In this document: piece after piece, positions 55,674-64,000 of the stretch
Layout of the letters: each line of letters starts with the position of its first letter
How positions within the stretch are numbered: the stretch's first letter is position 1
Assembly (NCBI GenBank): GCA_021613535.1
Contig: CP075495.1
Location: forward strand, 7,626,001 to 7,690,000
Source of the DNA: Adineta vaga
Taxonomy: Eukaryota > Animalia > Rotifera
Direction: 5' to 3'
Length of the DNA: 64,000 nt
Position numbers and translations under genes: made by a program
Notes under the pieces: model-generated
Database searches by the model: none
What the model was told of the DNA's origin: nothing
The model's input: only the letters and a program-made list of their open reading frames with translations

Positions 55674-57056
55674 ATGTGGCGACATAGCTCCTTTCCTAGA
55701 TGGAGGTTTCCTCCACCTTTCCGTTCACGTATGCGTTTAAGTCCGCCTATACGTTTAAGCCCACCAACAATTATCCCTATTCTACCTCCGGATCTGCCAG
55801 CAGTGAATAGAAAACCTCGTTCTGATACAACCAAACTTATTATTATCGTTATTGCAGTTATTATTGTCGCCTTCTTAGTACTTGGTATCATAGGTCTCGG
55901 AGTTGGTCTTGGTTTCAAAAAACCCTCAACACCACCCTTACCATCGGAAACTACTCAAATACCATGCAATGGAACAATGATAGAAAATAGATGTATACCA
56001 TATACCACAAAACCTTCAACGCCTGTCATTGTTCAAGTGATCAATACAACTACTACCGCACTTACCTTGTCTACGACAACAAAATCTTCATCTAGTATTA
56101 CGGAAACTGTTGTCCCACCTATTTCATCTGTTATAAAAGTAATCTCATCTAACGATGCTAGAATTGACACAACTACTCACTTATCCAATCCTACAACAAT
56201 ACCTTCTACTGCACTGCCTACAACTACAACTACTACGACCACAACTACAACCACACCAACAACTACAACTACGACGACCACAACTACAACCACACCAACA
56301 ACTACAACAACTACAACAACTACCACTACAGCAACAACGTCTACTACTACTACGACAACAACAACAACAACAAGTATATCATTAACAACGACGTTCATCA
56401 CAACTACACCCGAATCTAACAATTGGCCATTCATTGTAGCTCTCTACTTGCGCAATCAAAAGATTTGCACTGGCTTTCTTCTTACCAATCGACATGTCAT
56501 CACATCAGCTACTTGTGTCTACAATCTCGATGAAACTGCCATAGCTATCTATTTTGGTACGAACATTCTGTCAAACAAAAACAATCGATTCAAACGTACT
56601 ATTTCGAGTGTTGCGTATCCATCGACATATCGAAAAGGTCGAACAATCGATGATATTGCTGTTCTTACGCTCGCAAGAAATGTGACAATGAGCTCAACAG
56701 TTGGTGTTTGTTCAATTTCGAAAAGTATACTGATTCCACAAGTGGATGATGAAGGTATTGTGGTTGGTTGGAATGAAGCATCATCTTCTGAGAAACTTCA
56801 AGAAGCCGATATTCGAGTTGAAAATCCATCAACATGTGGTTTATCAACATTAATTAGGAGTCGTTTATGTGGTCGTTATATTAGTAACAGTAAATGTATG
56901 GGTGATCGTGGGAGTCCTTTAATAATTAAAACTGACAAGGATGAATGGGTATGTGCTGGTATTGCAATTGGTGATCGATCTCGATGTAGAGCAATTGGAA
57001 TCTATACTCGAATCAGTTATCATAATGAATTCATATTAAGTTCATTAGCAGGATGA
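55674..57056 (+). CDS. Type II membrane, mucin-stalked trypsin-like serine protease homologue, catalytically inactive (SPH1), 460 aa, single coding exon
   Basis: Pro/Arg-rich N-terminus, TM LIIIVIAVIIVAFLVLGIIGLGVGLGF, Thr-rich stalk, and an S1A fold (WPFIVAL, CTGFLL, DDIAVL, VVGW, GIYTRIS). TAAHC is replaced by TSATC and GDSGGP by GDRGSP; there is no R-IVGG activation site. Confidence 0.88.
   Translation: MWRHSSFPRWRFPPPFRSRMRLSPPIRLSPPTIIPILPPDLPAVNRKPRSDTTKLIIIVIAVIIVAFLVLGIIGLGVGLGFKKPSTPPLPSETTQIPCNGTMIENRCIPYTTKPSTPVIVQVINTTTTALTLSTTTKSSSSITETVVPPISSVIKVISSNDARIDTTTHLSNPTTIPSTALPTTTTTTTTTTTTPTTTTTTTTTTTTPTTTTTTTTTTTATTSTTTTTTTTTTSISLTTTFITTTPESNNWPFIVALYLRNQKICTGFLLTNRHVITSATCVYNLDETAIAIYFGTNILSNKNNRFKRTISSVAYPSTYRKGRTIDDIAVLTLARNVTMSSTVGVCSISKSILIPQVDDEGIVVGWNEASSSEKLQEADIRVENPSTCGLSTLIRSRLCGRYISNSKCMGDRGSPLIIKTDKDEWVCAGIAIGDRSRCRAIGIYTRISYHNEFILSSLAG
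56221..56370 (+). repeat. Poly-Thr coding repeat, including two near-identical 39-bp units (56221-56298)
   Basis: caactacaactac(t/g)acgaccacaactacaaccacaccaa twice, followed by ACN codon runs. Confidence 0.85.
56366..56849 (+). repeat. 484-bp direct repeat, copy 1 (copy 2 at 59826-60309)
   Basis: Base-by-base comparison at offset 3460 shows 6 mismatches, all synonymous. Confidence 0.92.
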
Positions 57057-57498
57057 ACAATAAATCAAAAAACATTTTTTTTCTGTTTTATACATAAATA
57101 TTCACTCATCATATGAGTTCTGTGGTGAGAATTTTTTTTGTCTGTTGAACATGTGTAATAATGTTTTTCGTTTTCGTAAAATATATGCATTTGTAATTGT
57201 AGTAGAGGAAACTATCTTTGTTTCACCAAACAGAATAAGAATAAGCAACATTTTTTAGTTGATATCCATATTAATCTGACGAGCAAATGGATTTAGTAAA
57301 AAACAAACTTTAAAGAAAAACAAAAATATCGATCATAAAATATATATGGCTTCATGACAACGTATTACAATCATTTTTTCTCATTTGCATCCATATTTTA
57401 CCTTTGTTTATGAGATTTCATATTTATTCATATATATTCACCTTGACAGTTTACATACTTTAAGATTTACTTTTACATTTCTTTCCTGTTATTGCTCG

Positions 57499-58305
57499 AT
57501 GCATATTATATTTCTCTTTCTCGTTATTGTATCCGCTGTCTCACAATATCAATGTGATATATTATCATGCAGGTTTGTATTATTTGATGTGCTCATTTTT
57601 CTTATCGTCTATCTAAAATCCCATCTCTATTTTTAAGAACCGACTGTTCTACAAATTATCCATGTTGGAAAGAAACTCTTGCTTATCATTCATCAGAAAT
57701 AGTACATCAATTATTTTCATTTGGTAATCTTGCTGTTTATGTCGATAATTTTCAACGCAATCATGAGTCTGAAGTTTGTTACATACATATTATTTGAATT
57801 TTACTTGTTTTAGTACTAAACTATTCGATTAACATTTATGTAGGTAAGCAAGGGCGAAAATGATAGTCACATAGAATTGATTGAAAAAGCTCTTGAAAAT
57901 CATTTGTCGAACGAAGTAAATGCTAGTAATCTACCATTGAGTTTATTCGAAGAAACGAAACTTCTCATTTTCAATTATGTAAGAAGTAAATGATTCAGGT
58001 CATATTGTTTAGATACTTTTGTCTTGTAGTGTACTGATTTAACATTGACAGAAATTGAATCCGTTGAAGACCTTCCACTATTACAATGTTCACAATCGAC
58101 ATGTTCATCGGATACAATGAATCTAATGGTACTTTTCATCATTAGTGTGCTTATTGGTGGATTTGTGGTTATCATGTTTATTGTTGAATCTTGCCAAATT
58201 TTACATCAAAGAAAAATAGCAAAAACGTTTATGGGATCTGCGAGATCACCAGATGTATATAAGATTAATAATCCAATTTTTGACATTCAAACAACTCGAT
58301 TTTAA
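57499..58305 (+). CDS. Uncharacterised small type I membrane protein (X1), 4 exons, 206 aa
   Basis: Exons 57499-57572, 57638-57773, 57844-57978 and 58030-58305 splice in frame via GT-AG introns. Signal peptide, SCRTDCSTNYPCWKET, helical ectodomain, C..CSQSTC, TM, and a tail ending NNPIFDIQTTRF*. Confidence 0.8.
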
Positions 58306-59496
58306 TATAGAATTTTCACGAAGAATGTAGTTTTATTATAACAAAAGATGTACTAATAATGTCTCATAGCAGATTCTTTTAAGTATCTTCGTTGTTTGCT
58401 TGAAACTATATAGCGTTAGCAGATAATATTTGCAATGAACTGATGTATATACATACAATATCAATAATGAGTTAATTTTGAGAAAACAGAGAAATAATTA
58501 TCCTTAAAACACAGTCGTTCTTTATCAAACGATAATTGTATGAATATAATAACATGCTAAGTGCTTCTAATAGTATAGGTTTTACAAAAGTATCATTTTG
58601 AATACATTGCAGATATGAAACTATCAATTAAATGGAACATGTAATGACATGTCTGATGGATCAAATTCATAGACAAATGGTTGGATGTCAATTTTTCAAA
58701 TATAATTCACAAAATGTTCACAAAAAATATCTCTCGAACCTAAGAAGATAATACTTTTCATTTCTCTACTCCTATGATAACATCTCATAATACTATGAAA
58801 AAATTCTTACCACTGAATATCGCACCATTCTGGGATCTATTGACCTGAAAAGAATTACTAACATAAATTTGCAATTGATAATTCTTTGGACTTCTTGTAT
58901 ATTCTATTAATTTCTATTCTTATAAACATATTGATGGCTACCTGTTGTTTTTTTTCAATTATCCAATGAATATTTTCGATTAACATCTATTTTTCATTGT
59001 CTAATTATCATTGACATTGTTTTATTATTTTTTTGAAGAGACTTCTCAACAATATTCTCAATGTCTTCACTAAACTGAAGGATATTAACAAAAAAAATAT
59101 CCATAAGGTCACCACTGTCTACTTTCCTTGTTTCTTCGTTTCGGTTTCTTTTACCAGACACTTTATTTATTCGAAATATTTTCTTTTATGAATATACATT
59201 ATCTGTTCTCAGTATACTTCAATGATGCCCATGAATATATACATATGATGAAGAGTAATTTCCTTCAGATGTAGATAGAACAAATGATAATGTTTCCTGC
59301 AGTCACAGTTCGTTTTCGATGTTATGAATAGGGAGAAATACTGTAAAAAAATCAAGGATGACAATGAGAATTGAGAGAAAACACCCAAATACAACATGAG
59401 AAATTGACATTGATCACAAGAGACTAATTTTCCACAGAAGAATTCTATATAACGCAGTGTAAAACGTTCTCCACTTCGTTATTAATTTTTCTCAAC

Positions 59497-60513
59497 ATGA
59501 AGCCTCATGTAAACGTATCAAGGATCAGATATCCTCAGCCACCGATTTTTCCGACAGCGGTTCCAGAAATGAACGAACAAAGTTCATCCAAGATGATTGT
59601 TATCATTGTTGTTGTAGTTGTTGGATCATTTCTATTTCTTGGTACACTTGCTATTGCACTCGGTCTTGGACTCGGCTTTGGTCTCAAAGAACCATCGAAT
59701 CCAGTTTCCCCAAAACTTCTTCCAACTACTCCAGCATGCAAACTATTGTTAGGTAAACAAGGTTGTGCACCAACTATCCCAACAACTTTATCCTCTACTA
59801 CTGCAGCTAAAACTACAACAACAATAACAACAAGTATATCATTAACAACGACGTTCATCACAACTACACCCGAATCTAACAATTGGCCATTCATTGTAGC
59901 TCTCTACTTGCGCAATCAAAAGATTTGCACCGGTTTTCTTCTTACCAATCGACATGTCATCACATCAGCTACTTGTGTCTACAATCTCGATGAAACTGCA
60001 ATAGCTATCTATTTTGGTACCAACATTCTGTCAAACAAAAACAATCGATTTAAACGTACTATTTCAAGTGTTGCGTATCCATCGACATATCGAAAAGGTC
60101 GAACAATCGATGATATTGCTGTTCTTACGCTCGCAAGAAATGTGACAATGAGCTCAACAGTTGGTGTTTGTTCAATTTCGAAAAGTATACTGATTCCACA
60201 AGTGGATGATGAAGGTATTGTGGTTGGTTGGAATGAAGCATCATCTTCTGAGAAACTTCAAGAAGCCGATATTCGAGTTGAAAATCCATCAACATGTGGT
60301 TTATCAACAGAAACCGAAAGTCAGTTTTGTAGTAGTTATAGAGATAACGATAAATGTATCGATGACCAAGGACGTGCATTATTGATTCGTAGAAATAATC
60401 AATGGGTATGTGCTGGAATTGCAATTGATGATACATTCAGATGCAGATCAATTGGAATCTATACTCGAATCGGATATTACTATGAATTTATCATGAATTC
60501 AATAAAACGATGA
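59497..60513 (+). CDS. Type II membrane trypsin-like serine protease homologue, catalytically inactive (SPH2), 338 aa, single coding exon; paralogue of 55674-57056
   Basis: Same architecture as SPH1 with a shorter stalk. TSATC lacks the His and CIDDQGRAL lacks the Ser. Confidence 0.88.
   Translation: MKPHVNVSRIRYPQPPIFPTAVPEMNEQSSSKMIVIIVVVVVGSFLFLGTLAIALGLGLGFGLKEPSNPVSPKLLPTTPACKLLLGKQGCAPTIPTTLSSTTAAKTTTTITTSISLTTTFITTTPESNNWPFIVALYLRNQKICTGFLLTNRHVITSATCVYNLDETAIAIYFGTNILSNKNNRFKRTISSVAYPSTYRKGRTIDDIAVLTLARNVTMSSTVGVCSISKSILIPQVDDEGIVVGWNEASSSEKLQEADIRVENPSTCGLSTETESQFCSSYRDNDKCIDDQGRALLIRRNNQWVCAGIAIDDTFRCRSIGIYTRIGYYYEFIMNSIKR
59826..60309 (+). repeat. 484-bp direct repeat, copy 2 (copy 1 at 56366-56849)
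   Basis: Near-identical to 56366-56849. Confidence 0.92.
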
Positions 60514-62195
60514 AGATAGACGAAACTATACCGTGTGTTTTATAATGTTACTATTTGCTATTTGAGTGTTGTGATGAGAATATTTTTCTTTTATGGAAAA
60601 GATTAGGTGATGGGTTTTTGTTTTTATGAAATATATTTAATTGGATTAGAAAGATATTGTTTTCACCATGATAAATACGAGAAGAACGATGTAGAAAATT
60701 GTCTAATTCATAGAAAATGATGCATATCAGCGATGAAGAAAAAAAATATGTGTTTCAAAGAATCGTTTCACGTCTGTCTAAACGAGAATAAAAAAAGAAT
60801 GTCTTCTTTTTGAAAAAAAATATTTTAGCATATAGAAATAGAAGAAACATATATTGATAATATATATTCTTTGCTTGTTGTCCGTCATGCTATGCTTCAC
60901 CTAAGATTTTTCATATTTCCGTTAATAAGAGAAATGTTCTGTAATGGGAACTACATTAAGTGTTTGCTGAATATTTCCCATCGGGTAGAAGAGAAAATCA
61001 ACAGATAGTGTTTAGGTTTTTTTTACTTTCCACTCGTGAATGTTAAAGGAGAAAAAAAATTTCTTTCGAAGGAGTGTTCTATTTCTTTTTCTAAACATTA
61101 TTTTAAAAAAATGCTTCTATATATGTGAAGAATGTAAAATGTATTCATTGAAAATGGTGAATTCGTAATATGTTTCAAGGCCAGGTATAAAAACTGCATT
61201 TAATAAATGATGTAGTACTATGAATTCCCTCAGTTATCAATATATTCATGAATTACAGTTCGATTATATTCAATTGTTGAGATTACCCTTGGATAAAAAC
61301 GAAAAGTTGGACTCGATAAAAGTACTCTTACGTTAGCAAAGATGTTCTTTCTTTCGGCTTGGCAAAACGAAATGAAAAGGTATGTCGATTCTTTCTTTTA
61401 TGAAGAAAAGTGAAGTAATAACGATATCAGTTATGAGATATCTACAGTATCATGATATCATCTTTCAGGATTTCTCTCTTATTTACTTCCATATTTTACC
61501 GTTGCGTCAAATACCATTTATACATATACACACACCTTTATGATCTATATACCTTGACATTTATCTTGAGATATCGATGCAAATTTGTTTTTCTTTTCAT
61601 GAAGATTTCATTTCGTTTTTTTTCTGTTTCTTATTATGTCTCGTTTCAAAATATCAATCTAAATCAGTACTATACAGGTTTGTAATATACCCTTTCGTTC
61701 ATAAAAACACGTCTTTTTTTTTGTAATAACTGTTTAAATTGTTAGTTCTCAGCGGATTTATAATATCGAAGTTTGTCGCACATTTTTTTGCCTGTCTTTT
61801 TTTCTTGTTTTCGTCTGTGATTATTCATATAGGTAAACAATAACAGTAGTAGCGACAGTATATTATTGATGGATAAAGCCCTAGAAAAATTATTCATCGA
61901 ACGAAATGTTCGTTAGTAACCTAACATTGAATTTTATCGAAGAGAAAGAGAATCTTACTTTTTCTTGTTGTAACTAAAATATGTATGCGAAATTCATATT
62001 ATACGAAGTTTTCTACTACATACATATCAGATTGTCGAATAGAACAAATATCATTGTAATATTATTTAATGATACTAATTAAAATATCGAAGTAACTATA
62101 TTTGTTCGATCTGATTTCTTTCATTCCTTTTAGGAAGATGAGTGAAATAGAAATCAATTTTGTTTCCTTTTTCATATTTACTATAGATTTATAAA

Positions 62196-62904
62196 ATGCA
62201 TTTTCATATTATCGTATGTTGGACATTTCTTTGTATATTACTACCGGTTTCAGGTCGTCGAGACTTGTTTGATACAAAATGCACGTAAGATAGTTTGTAA
62301 ATCATTATTAAATTTAATGAAATAACTATCACTAGACGTGAATGTAATACTGTAGAAGGTTCACTTGCTTGTTGGACAGCAACGACAGACGGTTTTGCTT
62401 ATGGTCTATCGACAGCTATGATTGATTTTTGTCAAGTAATACTCAAAGTTCGTGAACTTGCCAATGAAACAGTAAGTTCAATTAAAATCTAGATTTTGCT
62501 TTTTATTTATTTCCCTTCATAAAAAAAACAGGAATCGTGGTATAACATTAGTCGTAATATTCTAATGAAACAAATTGAAAACTATGAACTTGAAGAAGTT
62601 CGACAATTAAAAAAATCAGATATCGAAGCAATTGCCATTTCATTATTAAATAAAGTAAAATTTATTCATTGAATATATATATATATTTTGAAATTCTTCT
62701 ATGTAGTGTTATAACGCTTCATCACTTATCAATTCATTTGAACCACCATGTCCATCATGTACTAATGAACAAAATAAATTAATAAAACAATGGCAAGTTT
62801 CATCGATTGTTATATATTCTATTGGTTTATTTCTTGTTATAATTGTTTTACTTTTATACTTTTTATATACGTATTATGTTCGTCGTTCATATGTAACTAT
62901 TTAA
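62196..62904 (+). CDS. Uncharacterised small type I membrane protein (X2), 4 exons, 181 aa; distant paralogue of 57499-58305
   Basis: Exons 62196-62284, 62336-62471, 62532-62654 and 62707-62904 splice in frame. Signal peptide, KCTRECNTVEGSLACWTAT, helical ectodomain, C..CPSC, TM, and a tail RRSYVTI*. Absent from the ORF track. Confidence 0.8.
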
Positions 62905-63225
62905 AAAGAAGAAACTCATTTCTTTCTTGATTAGTATTGATATTTTTTCTACGGAGAAAAAGAATGAAATCAATGAATAGTAAGCTTTGTTTTTTTCTTT
63001 CTCTTTGGCCAAAAAAAAATAGAGCGCAAGCGAAAAGACATGAAAAAAAAGAACTGAAATCAACAAAACAAAGAAAAAGAAACAGAAACTGAAGAGAATA
63101 AGTGGGAAAGGGTCAGACTGAAAGAGAAAAGAAGAACTTTGTTGAAAATGTAGAAAGAGAAAGAGTTGTAGAAGAAGAAGAAGAAGAAGAAGAATCGTCA
63201 CAGATTTTTTATACATTTCCTTCTG

Positions 63226-64000
63226 CTATTCACATTCAAAATTAGGTACAACAGCATCTTCTTTAGTTGCCATATCATTAGTAGCAGTAGTATTCATACA
63301 ACTAATATTATTATTCGATAAAATTAAATCTTCATTAATAATTGAATTTGATACGGCTGTACTCATTGATAATGTCGATGCACTTCTATCACCACCAAAC
63401 CAAACATGTCCAAGAATATCTTGTGTCAAAAGACGTTCATCCGGTTTAACACGTATTAATGATCGAAGTAATGATCGTGCTTTTAATGAAATTGTTCGAG
63501 GTATATCAGGTCGACAACGACCTATTTTAATAAACAAACCCACTAAAGTTCGATCACAAAATGGATAACGACCAAAAAGCATTGTATATAAAATTATTCC
63601 TAAAAATGAAGTTTAATTCTTCTTCATAAGATATAATTTAAGATAGAAAGTGTACCTAAACTCCATGAATCAGCCATTTTGCCTGAATATGTTTGTCGAT
63701 TAAGAACTATTTCAGGACATGCATAAACCGGACAAGAAAAACGTGATGAAACATGATCATCAGTTGCTGTTGGAGTTGCAAGCATAATTGCTTCATCAAT
63801 TCCCGTTAATAATAAATGTGTATGTGTTTGATCTTGAAAAATAATTTTACGTAATTTTAAATCACGTACAATTAATCCCACACGATGACATATTTGTACG
63901 GCACGAACAATTTGAGAAAATAAATTTCTGGATTCATTTTCATGTAAACGATGTTTCTCTGTTATATATTGATGAAGATTATTCGTATAATTTGGATAAA
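63226..64000 (-). CDS. TRIB: Tribbles-family pseudokinase, 5' end outside the window
   Basis: CHRVGLIVRDLKLRKIIF (Tribbles LRDLKLRKF signature), SCPVYACPEIV, YSGKMADSWSLG, intron 63600-63655, LYTMLFGRYPF, ILGHVWF and C-terminal EDAVVP. Confidence 0.85.

Follow-up and report, generated by a model that had tools for sequence, protein, structure and literature searches.

The window analysed here is a stretch of 64,000 nucleotides from chromosome 2 of the bdelloid rotifer Adineta vaga (C2:7626001-7690000, in a genome of 100.8 Mb in six pieces with about 30% G+C). Toward its end four co-oriented genes alternate: SPH1, X1, SPH2 and X2. The SPHs are membrane-anchored homologues of trypsin-like serine proteases, the Xs are small membrane proteins. 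An earlier note on this DNA took the order for a duplicated two-gene module. We arrive at a different view. The alternation is probably a historical by-product of local duplication, pseudogenisation and gene conversion, with the dead proteases as binding modules and X1-X2 as the conserved unit. Judged by sequence comparison, the unit which is conserved is X1-X2 and not SPH-X. A working SPH-X link in Adineta is possible, yet it is not required by the data.

A dead fifth element in the cluster

SPH1 (55674..57056, 460 aa) and SPH2 (59497..60513, 338 aa) are intact, intronless open reading frames on the plus strand. X1 (57499..58305, 206 aa) and X2 (62196..62904, 181 aa), also on the plus strand, possess four exons each, i.e., 57499-57572, 57638-57773, 57844-57978 and 58030-58305 for X1, and 62196-62284, 62336-62471, 62532-62654 and 62707-62904 for X2. 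The coordinates and the reality of these genes, as given in the earlier note, are confirmed by the reading frames, the exon models and the RNA joints. The A-B-A'-B' alternation is present as described. What had been overlooked is a fifth element between SPH2 and X2, a decayed second copy of X1 (psiX1, plus strand, approximately 61450..61965). Thus, the true order is SPH1-X1-SPH2-psiX1-X2.

The decay of psiX1 is far advanced. Its upstream region and exon 1 are about 63% identical to X1, and both Cys of that exon are lost. Exon 2 is deleted, the relic of exon 3 is frameshifted and carries stops, and exon 4 is unrecognisable. A reading of psiX1 as a short live gene was rejected because psiX1 lacks exon 2, an unbroken frame, a transmembrane exon and any RNA contig. 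The contigs in question stem from three RNA runs of two studies and from one DNA run (2013); they were mapped to window positions 57000-62950 (5951 bases), which covers X1, SPH2, psiX1 and X2, and they report presence only, without a ranking of expression. None of the three RNA runs has a contig over psiX1, though the flanking genes X1 and X2 are covered. Because contigs show presence only, the gap is weak support for a silent psiX1.

The 3' flanks of SPH1 and SPH2 can be aligned. Together with the position of psiX1 behind SPH2 this indicates that the duplicated unit was SPH plus X1 and that the X copy has since died. X1 relics are found at the corresponding position in Adineta ricciae and Adineta steineri. 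The proposed duplication of a two-gene module therefore stands as far as the SPH-X1 segment is concerned; it does not extend to X2. X1-type and X2-type genes are already adjacent on chromosome 5 and in Rotaria, and X2 is not the B' of this duplication. Further, since the X copy belonging to the duplicate is dead, two matched cognate pairs do not exist.

Related loci and the age of X1 and X2

In the six-chromosome assembly AV20 the chromosome pairs 1, 2 and 3 of A. vaga are homoeologous to pairs 4, 5 and 6 (PMC8494291). The region at 44-70 kb in window coordinates is collinear with C5:10.677-10.702 Mb in reverse orientation. The chromosome 5 locus reads active protease C5a, dead SPH C5b, X1', X2', kinase. 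C5a has the full triad and an activation site; in C5b His57 is replaced by Ser and Ser195 by Ala. In A. ricciae the order is SPH1 (826 aa, with a long repetitive stalk), X1, SPH2, a short X1 relic, X2, kinase. A. steineri has one dead SPH, an X1 relic, X2 and the kinase. A metagenomic bdelloid contig carries one dead SPH (Ser195 to Arg), X1, X2 and the kinase. Three species of Rotaria have dystrophin, no intact protease, X1, X2 and the kinase. The kinase gene, in the window at 63226..64000 on the minus strand and running past the window end, is the conserved right-hand neighbour of X2 at every locus examined.

The protease position in Rotaria is instructive. Rotaria sp. Silwood2 has a stop-riddled protease relic about 3.3 kb upstream of X1 (L052:5396-5788), in Rotaria sp. 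Silwood1 only a faint trace is left upstream of X1-X2 (L048:6404-6499), and no protease was detected at the X1-X2 locus of Rotaria magnacalcarata. The two relics, located 3-4 kb upstream of intact X1-X2 genes, still show the activation-site region together with several in-frame stops. As a separate observation, X2 of R. magnacalcarata spans 3.2 kb compared to the usual 0.7 kb or so, the gaps between exons 1 and 2 and between exons 2 and 3 each being about 1 kb or more (L050:10001-13199); so its introns have expanded or taken up insertions.

The presence of X1-type and X2-type genes in Rotaria means that both are older than the split of Adineta and Rotaria, and X1' and X2' on chromosome 5 place their origin before the divergence of the homoeologues as well. 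The claim of a common origin of X2 and SPH2 in one duplication has to be given up: both types exist on chromosome 5, in Rotaria and in the metagenomic contig, and the true copy is psiX1. A caution voiced at the outset, that X1 and X2 are much more diverged than the SPHs, was well placed, as X1 and X2 parted long before SPH1 and SPH2 did.

Genome-wide, X exons of A. vaga occur on chromosomes 2 and 5 only. X-like exons are absent near four other protease-family paralogue loci of this species, SPH3 included, all of which encode active enzymes. SPH3 itself (C2:7699346-7700311, 326 aa, intact triad and a K|I-Y-Q-G site) is located about 9.3 kb past the window end. It is the copy most similar to C5a (47-57%), yet its place, on the far side of the kinase, eRF1 and BAF genes, breaks the collinear order, which suggests a local rearrangement on chromosome 2.

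How do these data bear on the idea of matched partners? It holds that an SPH and an X act as receptor and co-receptor, or as ligand and receptor, and that the module was duplicated and co-diverged into the pairs SPH1-X1 and SPH2-X2. A dead SPH is indeed directly upstream of X1 on chromosomes 2 and 5 of A. vaga, in A. ricciae and in the metagenomic contig. All proteins are membrane-bound with extracytoplasmic domains, X1, SPH2 and X2 are represented in the same three RNA libraries, and all four genes are under purifying selection. Yet X2-type genes predate both the duplication and the homoeologue split, the X copy born with SPH2 is a pseudogene, Rotaria retains X1-X2 without an intact neighbouring protease, A. 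steineri has kept SPH and X2 at a locus where no X1 is intact, no X is near the four other paralogue loci examined, and the adjacency resides within a block which is generally syntenic. That X follows SPH wherever both occur is true for five Adineta-type loci and false for three Rotaria species and four A. vaga paralogue loci. In summary, a matched-pair recognition system is largely unsupported, with a dead X in the duplicate, an older X2, and X1-X2 of Rotaria lacking an intact protease next to it; we regard such pairs as unlikely.

Gene conversion between SPH1 and SPH2

SPH1 and SPH2 have exchanged sequence. The SPH1 segment 56355..56849 pairs with 59815..60309 of SPH2, both on the plus strand, with 7 mismatches in 495 bp (about 98.6% identity); the last 243 bp are identical. 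The 158 codons compared within this tract differ at six positions, all six synonymous. Beyond the tract the picture changes: the 67 C-terminal codons of SPH1 and SPH2 are 52% identical with a dS of 0.63. The suspicion that SPH similarity is kept up by conversion was thus justified, because a tract of near-identity is flanked by far more diverged sequence. Its identity to A. ricciae is 71% for SPH1 and 65% for SPH2; being slightly closer to A. ricciae SPH1, the tract points to SPH1 as the likelier donor. Signatures of gene conversion have been reported for A. vaga (PMC8494291).

Some observations on the DNA run of 2013 belong here. Its word depth is approximately doubled over 59786-60382, as expected because the conversion tract is collapsed. 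Compared to window 57000-62950 the run differs at many single positions, lacks 21 bp at 60649 and has small indels in the X2 introns, which fits another haplotype or strain drift. A joint from 60432 to 57000 in this run was rejected as a rearrangement: an SPH1 contig was partly placed on its paralogue, and the examined stretch starts at 57000.

Order of events

The unconverted C-terminus permits dating. There SPH1 of A. vaga is 75% identical to SPH1 of A. ricciae (88% support) versus 52% to SPH2. SPH1 groups with its A. ricciae counterpart and therefore the SPH1/SPH2 split predates that speciation. We tentatively favour a duplication before the three Adineta species split, after which SPH1-X1 was lost from A. 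steineri and SPH1 and SPH2 evolved in concert. Alternatively, X1 of A. steineri may have decayed independently. No supported join was found in the SPH tree between the group of C5b and L044 and the dead clade of the chromosome 2 type; the tree is compatible with one loss of activity as well as with two.

The following scenario would account for the data. The bdelloid ancestor would have possessed an array of a membrane-anchored trypsin-like gene, X1, X2 and the kinase, in which X1 and X2 were already close tandem paralogues. In the Adineta ancestor, at the locus of the chromosome 2 type, the SPH-X1 segment would have been tandemly duplicated, and this put a second SPH and a second X1 between X1 and X2. 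The second X1 presumably decayed to psiX1. Later, SPH1 and SPH2 would have exchanged sequence by gene conversion. Duplication, decay of the X1 copy and conversion make the A-B-A'-B' appearance a historical accident; SPH2 does not have its partner copy in X2.

Several points weigh against our reading. The single SPH of A. steineri is outside the SPH1+SPH2 clade with 99% support in the SPH tree; the order of events in this species is ambiguous and fits either no duplication there or concerted evolution. The SPH-X adjacency at five Adineta-type loci leaves room for a functional tie; as a counterweight, synteny is not confined to these genes but extends from dystrophin to eRF1. The functional part of the explanation rests on inference. 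Lastly, a helical bundle for the X proteins can be named only tentatively because the predictions, described below, reach a pLDDT of just 60 and 69.

SPH1 and SPH2 are dead membrane-anchored protease homologues

Both proteins match Pfam Trypsin (PF00089), SPH1 at 1.8e-28 with 100.3 bits and SPH2 at 2.2e-25 with 90.2 bits, well above the gathering cut-off of 20.6 bits. The trypsin-fold domain encompasses aa 246-454 in SPH1 and aa 125-332 in SPH2. Across this domain the two are 85% identical, and they are paralogues as had been proposed. Aligned to active paralogues and to enteropeptidase, His57 is replaced by Thr in both, and Ser195 by Arg in SPH1 and by Gln in SPH2; Asp102 is retained in both. 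The zymogen site R|I-x-x-G is absent; in its place the SPHs have the segment T-T-P-E-S-N-N ahead of W-P-F. The active paralogues C5a, C1_6011 and C2_1006 carry an R|I-[IV]-N-G activation site. With His57, Ser195 and the activation site all lost, the earlier assignment as catalytically dead proteins is sustained: by their residues, SPH1 and SPH2 are catalytically dead S1A homologues.

The topology, predicted from hydropathy, is type II. A single hydrophobic segment, aa 49-83 in SPH1 and aa 28-63 in SPH2, is preceded by basic residues, and hydropathy gives no signal peptide in either protein. SPH1 thus comprises a Pro/Arg-rich cytoplasmic tail, the signal-anchor helix at about aa 55-81, a C-x8-C loop, a stalk of 163 aa (66% Ser/Thr/Pro) and the dead domain. 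In both SPHs the helix is followed by the C-x8-C loop and a Thr-rich stalk with 52-66% Ser/Thr/Pro; the stalk of SPH2 is shorter. A Pfam search yielded no second domain in SPH1 or SPH2 and no clip match. Hydropathy likewise upholds the claim that all four proteins of the cluster are single-pass membrane proteins, the SPHs of type II and the Xs of type I.

We infer that SPH1 and SPH2 derive from small active type II membrane proteases, with loss of His57, Ser195 and the zymogen site and acquisition of a mucin-like stalk. Most likely they would act as non-catalytic binding modules held off the membrane. SPH homologues with species names are from A. ricciae and A. steineri. A word-based protein search with SPH2 gave seven hits, none of them from Rotaria; owing to the word filter, this was not counted as a sign of absence. 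The literature searched contained nothing relevant on pseudoproteases of A. vaga.

Stalk length is variable; the SPH1 orthologues differ almost two-fold in total length (460 versus 826 aa). The A. ricciae SPH1 is an open reading frame of 826 aa, of which approximately 500 aa are short stalk repeats rich in Asn, Gly, Ser and Pro. In the public record of GCA_905250025.1 no gene is called for this SPH1 (L041:5662-8139), nor for the X1 beside it (L041:8560-9357), which has four intact exons. Further, a basic [YF]-P motif close to the N-terminus is common to all membrane proteases of this family, whether active or dead, e.g., R-W-R-F-P, R-I-R-Y-P, F-R-Y-P and M-N-Y-P (window 55674-55760 and 59497-59560, and paralogues in L033, L037 and L039), often with Pro-rich sequence next to it. 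It may serve, as a conserved element, in docking or sorting.

X1 and X2 are orphan type I membrane proteins

X1 and X2 share their gene structure, i.e., four exons with intron phases 2, 0 and 0 and a second exon of 45 aa in both. All introns are GT-AG and 51-70 bp in length. The six introns appear as RNA-contig joints exactly as modelled, in two studies, and none of these joints is in the DNA run. The X1 model equals the NCBI hypothetical protein I4U23_008135 (Adineta vaga). A poly(A) tail is seen on an X1 contig at about 58371.

In either protein a signal peptide precedes an ectodomain of about 110-125 aa with 7 Cys and one C-terminal helix, a type I topology according to hydropathy. The Cys framework is common to both, as is a C-x-N-x-[ST] sequon which opens exon 4. 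In X1 the pattern begins C-x4-C-x3-C-x5-8-C-W, in X2 C-x3-C-x8-C-W; a helical middle part and C-x-N-x-[ST]...C-x2-4-C follow. The complete family signature of signal peptide, Cys pattern, transmembrane helix and exon phases is present in both window genes and in their orthologues. A profile-profile comparison of X1 and X2 gave a probability of 88% and an E-value of 2.9e-6 over 148 columns. Exon layout and phases, Cys framework and profile match agree with the earlier proposal that X1 and X2 are paralogues.

The tails differ. X2-type proteins end 8-10 residues past the membrane with R-S-Y-x-S-[IVLM], without exception in the Adineta and Rotaria X2-type sequences. X1-type tails are longer and do not have this motif. 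Tyrosine-based sorting signals are well established, and on this ground the C-terminal Y-x-x-hydrophobic motif of X2 predicts adaptor-mediated endocytic or lysosomal sorting.

For similarity searches A. vaga X2 was used exon by exon; full-length X2-type analyses were carried out with Rotaria database proteins and unnamed contigs. Each X exon was searched against Pfam and nothing rose above noise. A profile search of 1.84 billion representatives retrieved 14 X proteins; those with names are 'unnamed' or 'hypothetical' proteins of Adineta or Rotaria and the rest are short unnamed environmental contigs. As homologues were found only in bdelloids or in unnamed environmental sequences, the X family appears to be bdelloid-restricted. 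AlphaFold2 predictions are all-helical with low confidence (pLDDT 60 for X1 from an alignment of 10 rows, 69 for a Rotaria X2-type protein). Neither Foldseek against PDB nor a shape search of the ESM Atlas produced a credible X match (E above 2, TM at most 0.41), and no fold was assigned. X1 and X2 are best viewed as bdelloid-only, disulfide-stapled, small type I glycoproteins, tentatively of mostly helical structure.

A leader on the X2 mRNA and the X1-X2 pair

The 5' end of the X2 RNA contig is at 62185, 10-11 nt or so ahead of the ATG and behind an AG, and is extended by ten non-genomic letters, ACTTACCAAG (window 62175-62198). The extended leader pattern ACTTACCAAGAGGT occurs 53 times in the genome, the reversed control 2 times. 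Most copies of the pattern form divergent pairs with a spacing of about 167 bp. These copies look like spliced-leader RNA genes and, given the leader-like tail, X2 therefore appears to be trans-spliced. A 23-nt spliced leader on more than half of bdelloid transcripts is mentioned in a passage of PMC1925144 which cites the original work.

The gap between X1 and X2 is 95-125 bp in Rotaria and 95-150 bp wherever no SPH2 insertion intervenes. Spacers of this kind, e.g., L033:2527-2672 on chromosome 5, L044:12168-12320 and L048:10733-10828, are reminiscent of trans-spliced operons.

Could X1 and X2, and not SPH and X, be the functional partners? They would form a heteromeric, possibly disulfide-linked pair expressed from an operon-like tandem unit which is resolved by spliced-leader trans-splicing. 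The short spacers, the adjacency and common orientation at eight of eight loci, and the X2 mRNA start with its leader tail speak for it. So does the odd number of ectodomain Cys in both types (7 in most; X1' of chromosome 5 is down two, with 5 left), which fits an intermolecular disulfide; this is speculation, and an odd Cys count is weak evidence. On the other hand no dicistronic RNA was seen among the RNA contigs, on chromosome 2 a distance of 3.9 kb separates the genes and X1 is polyadenylated at a site of its own, and operons of bdelloids are not established in the literature consulted. We consider this arrangement rather unlikely, though less so than matched SPH-X partners. More unlikely still is an extension of it, in which X1 and X2 are a disulfide-linked heterodimeric receptor specific to bdelloids, encoded by an operon-like, spliced-leader-resolved unit, with the dead protease as ligand-presenting or regulatory partner in Adineta. 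If true, X1/X2 and the dead protease would constitute a lineage-restricted recognition system at the cell surface or in endosomes, without counterpart in other animals. We continue with the reading that the order is historical and X1-X2 the conserved unit.

Selection and transcription

Measured against the A. ricciae orthologues at a dS of about 0.9, dN/dS is 0.31 for X1, 0.23 for X2, 0.22 for the SPH1 domain and 0.27 for the SPH2 domain. All four genes are, by these ratios, under purifying selection. Every Cys is kept between A. vaga and A. ricciae. X1, SPH2 and X2 are transcribed, as all three RNA libraries contain their contigs; those of SPH2 cover its unique N- and C-terminal parts and extend to approximately 60595. 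At the same time the cluster genes evolve fast compared to their neighbours on the evidence of homoeologue identities: 49% for X1 and X2, 30-37% for the SPHs, and 80-85% for the neighbouring kinase.

Is the cluster evolutionary debris, i.e., a set of redundant duplicates which drift to loss without a maintained function? Decay of psiX1, the protease relic at the corresponding position in Rotaria, and a divergence much faster than that of the neighbours (30-49% identity between homoeologues against 80-85% for the kinase) would be in line with this. It is contradicted by dN/dS values of 0.22-0.31 at a dS of about 0.9, by the conservation of all Cys between A. vaga and A. ricciae, by differences in the compared codons of the conversion tract which are all synonymous, by spliced transcripts in two studies and by the retention of intact X1 and X2 across two bdelloid families. 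Debris is thus already largely refuted and highly improbable.

Implications

Gene order alone can suggest a functional module which in fact is absent. Here, the pairing vanishes once a pseudogene relic, a homoeologue and sister genera are taken into account. Three items merit attention: a lineage of mucin-stalked membrane pseudoproteases which goes back to active type II membrane proteases and is still under selection; the orphan X1/X2 glycoprotein pair, present in two bdelloid families with a likely sorting signal, as candidates for a bdelloid-specific cell biology; and a clear case of interlocus gene conversion in an asexual animal where conversion is thought to be important. Current views are not overturned. 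Annotators gain names and precise models of genes which at present are listed as 'hypothetical' or, in the case of A. ricciae, lack a call altogether.

Comparison with known systems

The SPHs resemble the type II transmembrane serine proteases, e.g., enteropeptidase, hepsin and TMPRSS11D/13, in having a cytoplasmic N-terminal tail, a single signal-anchor, a stem and a C-terminal S1A domain on the outside. The best match to a solved structure is the enteropeptidase light chain (2.6e-17). The active A. vaga paralogues are similar to this class with an activation site, a Cys-rich pro-segment and a catalytic triad which are kept. In contrast, SPH1 and SPH2 are without His57, Ser195 and the activation cleavage site, and their stem is an unstructured Ser/Thr/Pro mucin-like stalk devoid of SEA, LDLa, SRCR, CUB, MAM or frizzled modules.

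Non-catalytic serine protease homologues exist elsewhere, such as the clip-domain SPHs of arthropods (masquerade) and haptoglobin, HGF/MSP and azurocidin of vertebrates. These are secreted proteins with clip, kringle or CCP domains, and activation-site cleavage still takes place in many of them. The bdelloid SPHs share with them a trypsin fold which remains under selection after catalytic loss; by comparison with this established group, a binding or cofactor use may be expected. Unlike the arthropod clip-domain SPHs they have no clip domain and no cleavage site and are anchored in the membrane by an N-terminal helix.

Lysosomal and endocytic type I proteins of the LAMP-1 type carry a C-terminal Y-x-x-hydrophobic sorting signal. 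The short X2-type tail with R-S-Y-x-S-[IVLM] is alike, a likeness in sequence alone. Unlike the LAMPs, X2 shows no similarity in sequence or fold and has a predicted helical, Cys-stapled ectodomain of about 110 aa without a relative in Pfam, PDB or the Atlas.

As to its history, nothing about the cluster is unusual. It displays every hallmark of tandem segmental duplication, pseudogenisation and interlocus conversion: flanks present twice, one copy in decay, and a near-identical tract with sharp borders inside paralogues which are otherwise diverged.

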